Assembly (NCBI RefSeq): GCF_000143415.4
Contig: NW_003314317.1
Coordinates: 1,123,183 to 1,187,182 of the forward strand
Direction: 5' to 3'
DNA length: 64,000 bases
Source of the DNA: Selaginella moellendorffii
Taxonomy: Eukaryota; Plantae; Lycopodiophyta
The notes beneath the pieces were generated by a model. It was not told the origin of the DNA and made no database searches. It was given only the letters and a program-made list of their open reading frames with translations. Of this stretch, positions 43,563-45,104 are shown piece after piece; positions within the stretch are counted from its first letter, which is position 1; each line of letters starts with the position of its first letter. The position numbers and the translations under genes were made by a program.

Positions 43563-45104
43563 ATGGAGACCCTCAAGTTCTTGCTGCTGCTCTCGTCGTT
43601 CCTGACTCTTGCAAGAGCTGATCAGCAGCAGCCATGGGTATGGCTGGATCCAGATAGTGATCTCGAGCAGAAACCACGGCTTTCTTACCGATCAACCTGG
43701 CAAGGTGACAGGATAATGGATTTCTCCGCGGTTGGCTACCGAGGTGGGATGGATCCCATTCCCCCGGCTCCTCCAGTGAAGGTAACGTTGTTTCCTGGTG
43801 GTGGCGGCAGCAGCGACGACACAGAGGCGCTGCAAGCGGCAATAAACACCGTGTCTGCCATGCAACCAGACGAGCAAGGATTCAGAGGGACTGTAAAACT
43901 TGCGAAAGGGACGTTCAACCTCGGTAAGCAGTCCATAGTGATCAACACCAGCGGCGTCATTATAGATGGCAGCGGCGTAGACCAAACGCTGATCGACGCA
44001 CACTCTCTGGAGGCCCAAGTTTTGTTCCGGATCCATGGAAATCCTGCGACGACAGTAAACAGCACACGGTCAGCTGTTGTCGAGACAGTTCCTTCCGGGA
44101 GCAAAACTCTCCGGCTAAGTTCAGTAGCAGGCTTCTCCGAGGGAGACCAAGTGAGTATTACCTGGACTTGGAGCCCCCAGTGGATCCAGATGATGAACAT
44201 GAGCGACTACTGGCGGCCGGGATACGGCTACAAAGCCGAGCGGATCATAAAGACGGTCTCCACACTCGACTCTTCCATCCAGCTGGATATCCCTCTCCCG
44301 TTTCGACTGGACACGAACTACCTGGACGACGCTCACGGCGCAAGCGTCGAGAAGATATCCACAGCCCCCCGCATCGGCCGAGTCGCCCTGCAGAACTTCA
44401 AGGCGGTGAAGAACATCACATTTCCAGGCACGGGATGCTTCCTAAAAATGCAAGACGTGGAGGATGCGTGGATAACCGACCTGGAGCTCCACGACTTCAG
44501 CGGCACAATCCTGAAATACCCTAGAGAGTTGCTCCATACCTCGATCGCCATCGCTGGGACGAGAGTCACGGCCCAGAACTTGGTCCTGCACCGCACCGCG
44601 AACGCAACAAAGGGGCCGAAACCGTTCGACATAGCTCTCCACCGTCCTGGACAGCAAATACTCGTGAGAAACGTCACCGTATCTGGGAACAGGGAATACA
44701 GCTTCATTACTGGAGACAGCATCGCCGGCCCCAACGTCTTCCACAACTGCACCGGATTCGGAGCCAACACCGCGCAGCCGCACATGAGGTTCGCCACTGG
44801 ACTGCTGTACGACAACCTTCGTATACCAGACGGTGGCATCGAGATGATAAACCGGCGATGGTTTGGAAGCGGCCATGGCATTGCCGCCGCCTTCTCCGTT
44901 GCATGGAACACGGAGAGCAAAAGCTTGCAGGTGATCAGCTCTCCCGGGGCTGCAAACTGGGCGTTAGGATGCCGAGCTCAAGAGGTGAACGACAAGATAC
45001 AAGGGATAAGCGAACCTGGATTCGTGGATGCGGTCCTAGATCCACGTATTCCCTCGCTTTTCCTGGCTCAGCGTCACGCTGCCGGCATGCCGGCCGTCTT
45101 CTAG
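43563..45104 (+). CDS. Secreted right-handed beta-helix (pectate-lyase superfamily-like) protein of bacterial type
   Basis: Intronless 513-aa ORF with a signal peptide (METLKFLLLLSSFLTLARA) and motifs IMDFSAVGYRGG, DDTEALQAAIN, GTVKLAKGTF, GPNVFHN, QPHMRFATGLLYDN and NRRWFGSGHG. Confidence 0.8.
   Translation: METLKFLLLLSSFLTLARADQQQPWVWLDPDSDLEQKPRLSYRSTWQGDRIMDFSAVGYRGGMDPIPPAPPVKVTLFPGGGGSSDDTEALQAAINTVSAMQPDEQGFRGTVKLAKGTFNLGKQSIVINTSGVIIDGSGVDQTLIDAHSLEAQVLFRIHGNPATTVNSTRSAVVETVPSGSKTLRLSSVAGFSEGDQVSITWTWSPQWIQMMNMSDYWRPGYGYKAERIIKTVSTLDSSIQLDIPLPFRLDTNYLDDAHGASVEKISTAPRIGRVALQNFKAVKNITFPGTGCFLKMQDVEDAWITDLELHDFSGTILKYPRELLHTSIAIAGTRVTAQNLVLHRTANATKGPKPFDIALHRPGQQILVRNVTVSGNREYSFITGDSIAGPNVFHNCTGFGANTAQPHMRFATGLLYDNLRIPDGGIEMINRRWFGSGHGIAAAFSVAWNTESKSLQVISSPGAANWALGCRAQEVNDKIQGISEPGFVDAVLDPRIPSLFLAQRHAAGMPAVF

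Follow-up and report, generated by a model that had tools for sequence, protein, structure and literature searches.

A probable ancient bacterial acquisition in Selaginella moellendorffii: an intronless gene for a predicted secreted beta-helix protein, overlapped by spliced antisense RNA with a MIR156-like hairpin

Transfers of wall-active enzymes from bacteria to land plants are known from other cases, as are microbial-type genes that are confined to non-seed plants. Few bacterium-to-plant transfers have survived for more than 400 million years, and each of them shows what early vascular plants borrowed for wall building or defence. Here we describe a gene that resembles those cases in being bacterial-type, intronless, patchily distributed in lycophytes and ferns and absent from seed plants, but that belongs to a different protein family. 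It lies in a 64,000-nucleotide stretch of the Selaginella moellendorffii genome (contig NW_003314317.1, positions 1,123,183 to 1,187,182 of the forward strand; hereafter the window), where a first-pass annotation made from the sequence had proposed a horizontally acquired, polysaccharide-lyase-like bacterial gene. We find the origin by horizontal acquisition from bacteria to be well supported and highly probable, and we give a probability of roughly 0.7 to the whole statement that joins bacterial acquisition with a function on pectin-type glycans.

The open reading frame (ORF; 43560/43563..45104, plus strand) runs for 513 codons from its ATG without a stop or frameshift, and it is a single ORF collinear with bacterial homologs of 500-550 amino acids, so that the gene is intronless, as had been claimed. 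All five motifs quoted in the first-pass annotation are present (DFSAVGYRGG, DDTEALQAAI, GPNVF, PHMRFATGLLYDN and NRRWFGSGHG). The predicted signal peptide also stood: read from the sequence, the N-terminus, METLKFLLLLSSFLTLARA before the residues DQ, is laid out in n, h and c regions like a eukaryotic signal peptide and offers an A-x-A cleavage site, and residues 2-18 form a low-confidence N-terminal helix in the structural model described below. The other plant copies carry hydrophobic leaders at the N-terminus as well. At the locus of one Diphasiastrum complanatum homolog (P0002; L001 ~10160-10245), an in-frame upstream ATG (MWNAFLLAAVMMGNIL...) would yield a better signal peptide than the annotated start.

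Distribution, integration and origin

An exhaustive HMMER search of 1.84 billion representatives returned 2,794 matches at E<=1e-3 (428 of them at E<=1e-30), and the best 150 were looked up taxonomically. The homology, at E 1e-60 to 1e-111, is far beyond chance. The best match, SELMODRAFT_407052, is 98% identical and comes from the other S. moellendorffii haplotype. Also ranked above the bacterial bulk were a second, divergent Selaginella locus (SELMODRAFT_419717, allele 431084; 41%), here called paralog B, and a Psilotum nudum transcript from EukProt (43%). Among these best 150 matches, the plants above the bacterial score level are Selaginella (two loci), Diphasiastrum and Psilotum only, with no match from a seed plant, bryophyte or alga. 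Neither a plant-only profile nor the Psilotum protein as query added a seed plant, bryophyte, alga or another fern. A word-index protein search listed the two Diphasiastrum proteins (43%), below which all entries were bacterial or metagenomic (32-37% identity). It overlooked the Selaginella paralog and Psilotum, so that no absence was inferred from its blanks. Two matches considered as eukaryotic intermediates (P0123 and P0142) were rejected, both being on bacterial contigs, the former next to rpsP-trmD-rplS. The other high-ranking non-plant match (P0124) is a Logan protein that groups with bacteria.

The window gene is physically integrated in host chromosomes. Although a bacterial-type protein without introns could also arrive by bacterial contamination or misassembly, we regard this explanation as practically negligible. 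Scaffold GL377571.1 aligns collinearly with ~20 kb of the window (96-98% identity) and therefore represents the other haplotype, and the ORF is intact and flanked by plant genes in both. The ORF is also traversed, on the opposite strand, by contigs of RNA origin whose short GT-AG introns can be produced only in a eukaryotic nucleus, which excludes contamination. The homologous Diphasiastrum genes lie on chromosomes of 45-49 Mb, where one adjoins an intron-rich ACCase gene, and these genes, like paralog B, sit on Mb-scale plant scaffolds beside intron-bearing plant genes. Codon composition is host-like too. The ORF had been described as GC-rich, which holds against the window mean (0.56 versus 0.41) but not as an anomaly: its GC content and its GC content at third codon positions (GC3, 0.66) equal those of the adjacent PPR coding sequences (0.52-0.57 and 0.57-0.72), so the composition is that of the host and was rejected as a sign of horizontal transfer.

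The relatives share the intronless organization. Both Diphasiastrum genes are single uninterrupted ORFs. An intron suggested in one of them (P0002) by its gene range of 1,754 nt was rejected, since tblastn gave one uninterrupted high-scoring segment pair and the extra length is untranslated region (UTR). Paralog B is also intronless and lies among PPR, ELO and IP5 2-kinase genes; a tandem second copy beside it was rejected, the neighbour being PPR-like.

For the phylogeny, the homologous domain was cut from 300 fetched proteins and analysed with FastTree and then, for 90 rows, with IQ-TREE under LG+C20+F+G4 PMSF and a careful search. The seven plant sequences form one clade (support 100/100) on a long stem of 0.72. 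Apart from them, the larger clade in which they are nested (also 100/100) contains bacterial or metagenomic sequences only, and another bacterial clade lies outside it. All plant proteins share D247F, H344R, T312F and A352P at positions conserved in bacteria. Within the plant clade, paralog B is joined by Psilotum (100/98), the Diphasiastrum genes form a pair of their own (98/85) and the position of the window gene is weakly resolved. Ten lineages near the plant clade consist of metagenome proteins only, and the high scores of Chitinophagaceae reflect short branches. Broad green-plant orthologs were not found in the search above, and the horizontal transfer proposed by the first-pass annotation is supported by integration, by the narrow plant range and by the nesting of plants within bacteria.

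The transfer is very old and not specific to Selaginella, being common to clubmosses and the whisk fern. The simplest reading is one acquisition before the split of Selaginella and Lycopodiaceae, followed by duplication and losses, and this acquisition probably also preceded the split of lycophytes and euphyllophytes; alternatively, the gene may have reached the Psilotum lineage later, in a transfer between plants. Under this scheme, an ancient single transfer would have given plants a member of a bacterial family of glycan-degrading enzymes that is uncharacterised. Two ancient gene lineages would survive in plants, whereas seed plants and bryophytes would have lost the gene or never fixed it.

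Several points weigh against this reading. Plant coverage consisted of deposited proteins, so that genomes of ferns, lycophytes and bryophytes were included only if their proteins had been deposited, and the Psilotum copy is known from a transcriptome alone. Support for the sister group of the plant clade is 33/19, too low to single out a donor phylum. As the tree is unrooted, it is the thousand-fold excess of bacterial members that indicates the direction of transfer. Moreover, a 509-residue transcript product of the amoebozoan Protostelium nocturnum (P0163, EukProt) belongs to the same family and falls into the same unresolved polytomy next to the plant clade, and language-model features flagged a look-alike cluster in Ascomycota. 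The Protostelium sequence could derive from prey or contaminant bacteria or from a separate transfer, but the two cases imply that other eukaryotes may hold relatives, and other routes keep a small probability. They are also what would be expected of an ancient eukaryotic gene inherited vertically and lost nearly everywhere, with lycophytes, a small number of ferns and certain amoebae or fungi as the exceptions. We consider such a history distinctly improbable, given that it requires many independent losses, that every plant copy is intronless, that plants are nested in an otherwise bacterial clade and that the best 150 matches of the search include no other plant or algal lineage above the bacterial score level. 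The gene identifiers were not found in the searchable literature, which did not include the main survey of horizontal transfer to land plants, where a prior listing is possible.

Fold, conserved residues and candidate substrate

An AlphaFold (AF2) model built from a 49-sequence alignment (pLDDT 86, pTM 0.89) clearly has the right-handed parallel beta-helix fold of the pectate-lyase-like class. A structural scan of the whole PDB gave 152 chains at Z>=8, all of them right-handed parallel beta-helices in a flat ranking that reached Z 28. GH28 exo- and endo-polygalacturonases stand at Z 27-28, and a rhamnogalacturonase, the AlgE4 epimerase, tailspikes, GH82 and PL6/PL9/PL1 enzymes follow at Z 20-26, with PL6/PL9/PL1 at 20-22, lower than GH28; identity is 9-16% throughout. 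The top Foldseek matches are capsule depolymerases and tailspikes. Structural neighbours in the ESM-Atlas (TM 0.81-0.87) are all bacterial, and several have T9SS sorting, BACON or discoidin domains, which are usual equipment of secreted glycan degraders. Together with the HMMER distribution, in which the family is overwhelmingly bacterial, this fold agrees with the first-pass description of uncharacterised bacterial beta-helix proteins.

Sequence models place the protein less precisely. It scores above none of the cut-offs of the curated models PF12708, PF13229 and TIGR03805, reaching E 6e-4 and 20.1 bits against a cut-off of 27 for PF12708 (Pect-lyase_RHGA_epim) and 15.7 against 141.5 for TIGR03805, and there is no match to PF00295 or to any Pfam lyase family. 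Profile matches to the PDB, among them one to the 7chu tailspike (E 9e-8), are confined to the N-terminal cap. Membership in GH28 was rejected at the sequence level, because the catalytic Asp triad and the GHG and RIK motifs are not alignable; aligning the family profile with those of three GH28 neighbours in hhalign recovered 29 cap residues (within 86-121) at a probability of 33%. Across 49 family members there are only sub-threshold matches to DUF4955 or PF12708, with 13 of the 49 at E<0.01, and a literature search on DUF4955 found nothing. The claim that the protein does not resemble plant GH28 enzymes is therefore correct for the sequence but not for the fold, where an Arabidopsis polygalacturonase reaches Z 25. 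The word 'lyase' in that annotation is not established, since the fold is equally common to GH28 hydrolases, epimerases, PL6/PL9 lyases and tailspikes and no catalytic motif can be assigned. The model is compatible with hydrolase, lyase and epimerase activity alike.

Conservation gives some indication of where an active site might be. Column statistics over 293 non-plant homologs identify D53, D85, R227, E277, H407, R409, D417, R431, H438 and N465 as the most conserved polar residues (93-100%), and the window protein keeps nine of these ten. The most conserved block holds GPNVF, PH407, D417, N430-R431, GSGH438G and N465, and its conservation and coil periodicity make it a candidate for the active-site coils. 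The spacing of H407, D417, R431 and N465 by 21-27 residues suggests that they would be stacked on adjacent coils.

The exception among the ten is E277, which is Glu in 97% of non-plant homologs. The window protein and the two Diphasiastrum proteins have Gln at this position and Psilotum has Ser, whereas paralog B retains Glu. Some plant copies also lose D85, R409, H438, W440 or G435/G437. Such variation at near-universal residues argues against an unchanged enzyme, and catalysis may have been altered or lost. A serious, though less likely, alternative is that the gene was acquired as described but that its ancestral catalysis has gone, leaving a protein that binds or senses glycans or an enzyme whose reaction or substrate has changed. 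The long plant stem branch and the plant-wide replacements D247F and H344R fit that scenario. However, H407, D417, R431, N465, D53 and R227 do not vary among the seven plant sequences, at least five loci have kept an intact ORF for hundreds of millions of years, and E277, separated from the most conserved block by ~130 residues or about five coils, may not be catalytic. We favour an enzyme acting on glycans, with the caveat that no characterised family member was found among PDB, profile and literature searches.

Bacterial gene neighbourhoods provide the best guide to the substrate. In Pedobacter and in a metagenome-assembled genome of Abditibacteriaceae, the homolog lies in a co-directional cluster with GH28, a Pel9A/chondroitinase-B-like lyase, a GH29 alpha-L-fucosidase and a He_PIG-GH27 alpha-galactosidase, to which the Pedobacter cluster adds GH3 and GDSL/SASA esterases. 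To count such neighbours, the ORFs of 79 bacterial loci, mostly from soil Chitinophagaceae, Sphingobacteriaceae, Planctomycetota, Acidobacteriota and Verrucomicrobiota, were searched with hidden Markov models of these genes, and those that measured 15 kb or more, 49 in all, were used for the counts. GH28 and GH29 are each present in 21 of the 49 loci and both together in 18, the Pel9A-like lyase in 12 and the GH27-like gene in 10. Nearly all of these neighbours share the strand of the homolog, the median distance to it is ~1.5 kb, and the association recurs in three phyla. SusC genes are far more numerous per Bacteroidota genome. GH28 is nevertheless commoner near the family than SusC (12 loci), a comparison for which no formal background was measured. 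Many bacterial clusters, including one in Pedobacter (L005 2673-4718), contain two or three family copies, of which one is a fusion with an F5/8 type C (discoidin) domain at the C-terminus.

Because the bacterial homologs lie in same-strand clusters with GH28, GH29, Pel9A-like lyase and GH27-like genes, these neighbours point to a substrate that contains galacturonate and fucose, such as pectin side chains, structures like rhamnogalacturonan II or root mucilage. By analogy, we infer the same substrate specificity for the plant protein. It would then be a secreted beta-helix protein, probably N-glycosylated (there are seven N-x-S/T sequons), that its signal peptide would send to the apoplast. 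There, the groove lined by the His407, Asp417, Arg431, His438 and Asn465 coils would bind polysaccharide, and an acidic, pectin-like, possibly fucosylated polysaccharide of wall, mucilage or microbes would be cleaved or remodelled. The wider interest is that a large enzyme family of soil bacteria, with ~2,800 clusters, has no Pfam model, solved structure or known activity, and that its neighbours suggest a missing step in the breakdown of fucosylated pectin or root mucilage.

Transcripts of both strands

Contigs of four small assemblies were mapped on 42300-47300, and the presence of splice joints identifies them as RNA-derived. Those of X1, X4 and X8 skip 43855-43919, 44043-44160, 44646-44698 and 44950-45015, and X4 also skips 44387-44479. 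Six further joints lie to the left of these, and 10 of the 11 joints are CT..AC, which corresponds to GT..AG on the minus strand. The spliced RNA is thus antisense to the beta-helix gene and spans its whole coding sequence, a feature that the first-pass annotation had missed. It is apparently non-coding, since the joined exons have stops in all frames. The v1 annotation placed two antisense 'protein' genes of 218 and 204 amino acids, without Pfam matches, within the beta-helix coding sequence (L003 9560-10474 and 10559-11319, minus strand, corresponding to ~43122-44036 and 44121-44881 of the window), and these are probably spurious ORFs on the antisense RNA. Inside the same transcript there is a tandem duplication of ~300 bp (42627-42914 versus 42936-43225, ~82% identity), with two introns of 112/113 nt that have identical GTACGT...TTGTAG ends.

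The antisense contigs end at 45288-45309, just beyond a MIR156-like hairpin that contigs at 45016-45309 cover. This hairpin scores 35.3 bits against Rfam RF00073 (E 3e-4; gathering score 62) and folds at -46.2 kcal/mol (z -5.2), and its 5p arm contains a miR156-like 20-mer, TGACAGAAGACAGGGAGCAC, at 45266-45285, with two mismatches to miR156. Two more such hairpins lie upstream of it on the same strand (Table 1). All three are under the Rfam gathering score, at E 8e-6 to 3e-4, and the same three occur in the other haplotype. The antisense RNA that begins at the first hairpin may regulate the window gene.

Evidence for the sense transcript comes from a fourth assembly, run X2, which yielded an unspliced 2-kb contig comprising the ORF and flanks of ~245 nt. 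It carries the variants of the other haplotype, has an adapter at its left end and an A-rich loose end or A-run at its right end (~45350), and reaches a depth of 150, compared with 44 in the antisense-only region, with the depth collapsing beyond the contig. These features fit a compact plus-strand mRNA with UTRs of ~245 nt and a 3' end that contains the perfect complement of the miR156-like sequence. We therefore consider sense expression probable, although the X2 contig gives no strand, which limits this reading. Words from the 118-nt antisense intron are present in nine putative RNA runs of four studies.

The missing strand information leaves room for a different account, in which the ORF is a coding relic, the functional product is the spliced minus-strand RNA with its MIR156-like hairpin and the presumed sense contig is unspliced antisense precursor. 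Spliced antisense contigs are the only form assembled over the ORF in three of the four runs, as this account would predict. The haplotypes, in addition, differ at 12 nonsynonymous and 7 synonymous codons; the resulting ratio of nonsynonymous to synonymous substitution rates, about 0.5 from 19 codons only, is uninformative. Yet the reading frame of 513 codons is uninterrupted in each haplotype, and its orthologs and paralogs are intact even though the antisense-MIR156 arrangement, while present in both haplotypes, is not near the Diphasiastrum genes or paralog B. The unspliced contig also stops at 43317, whereas antisense RNA continues below 42300; its depth is three times that of the region with antisense RNA alone, and an A-run marks its right end. 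We judge a relic improbable and retain the reading of a probably expressed protein-coding gene. The first-pass suggestion of a domesticated enzyme is plausible, though unproven, with sense expression only probable and a 97%-conserved Glu replaced by Gln.

A more ambitious proposal can be made from the same observations, which we offer as speculative and rather doubtful. The captured gene may be embedded antisense in a spliced primary MIR156 transcript whose miR156 variant (45266-45285) is perfectly complementary to the 3' region of the gene, tying it to the miR156 developmental timer or to silencing by antisense RNA or natural-antisense small interfering RNA, and its product may represent a new family of carbohydrate-active enzymes for fucosylated pectic glycans. 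The antisense MIR156 arrangement offers a testable case of foreign-gene regulation in a host.

Genomic setting and comparison with known systems

The plant setting asserted for the gene is evident from its PPR, tRNA and MIR156-like neighbours, which are listed with the other features in Table 1. The two tRNA genes score 61 and 74 bits in Rfam, and BLAST cross-matches suggest more tRNA-like copies around 38598-38672. ORFs at the left edge of the window (10-549 and 1770-3289, plus strand) include a NIF/FCP1-like phosphatase domain (PF03031, E 2.5e-5).

Table 1. Features of the window discussed in the text (aa, amino acids of the window protein; CDS, coding sequence)
Feature	Position	Strand	Basis or remark
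Intronless CDS, 513-aa predicted secreted beta-helix protein	43563..45104, stop included	+	ORF list, homology, AF2 model
Predicted signal peptide, aa 1-19	43563..43619	+	Cleavage after A-R-A; read from sequence
N-terminal cap/first coils, aa 80-149	43800..44009	+	Sole part with a weak named-family match
Codon 277, Gln for Glu	44391..44393	+	Glu in 97% of non-plant homologs
Most conserved block, aa 389-469; candidate active-site coils	44727..44969	+	Conservation, coil periodicity
Unspliced 2-kb RNA contig, candidate sense mRNA	43317..45344	+ (candidate; contigs carry no strand)	Run X2
Spliced antisense transcript over whole CDS	42300..45309, continuing left of 42300	-	Contigs of X1, X4, X8
MIR156-like hairpin	45207..45286	-	First exon of antisense transcript, ~100 nt past CDS stop
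MIR156-like hairpin	47891-47966	-	
MIR156-like hairpin	49825-49906	-	
PPR gene	50599-53070	+	
PPR-E-DYW gene	53275-56205	-	
tRNA gene	40443-40515	-	Rfam
tRNA gene	40758-40830	-	Rfam

Three described systems invite comparison with this locus. The GH28 enzymes (Thermotoga exo-polygalacturonase 3jur, Z 28.0; Arabidopsis PGLR 8ikx, Z 25.3) share the right-handed parallel beta-helix at a similar size and a similar N-terminal cap motif (DDT..IQ.AI), and in bacteria their genes are co-located with the family. They differ from it in that identity is ~12% and the NTD/DD/GHG/RIK catalytic series is not alignable to the family. Proteins with PF12708 or DUF4955 and the tailspike depolymerases 7chu and 7w1c are linked to the window protein by weak matches in the cap region and by likeness in Foldseek, but the window protein lacks a trimerisation or particle-binding domain and all these matches are below curated cut-offs.

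For the antisense arrangement, the closest parallel is found among cis-natural antisense pairs that consist of a miRNA gene and, on the other strand, its target, as in mammalian Rtl1 and miR-127. The Selaginella locus would be similar, in that here too a miRNA-type hairpin appears to lie antisense to a coding gene of foreign origin and its predicted small RNA would be perfectly complementary to the 3' region of the sense transcript.

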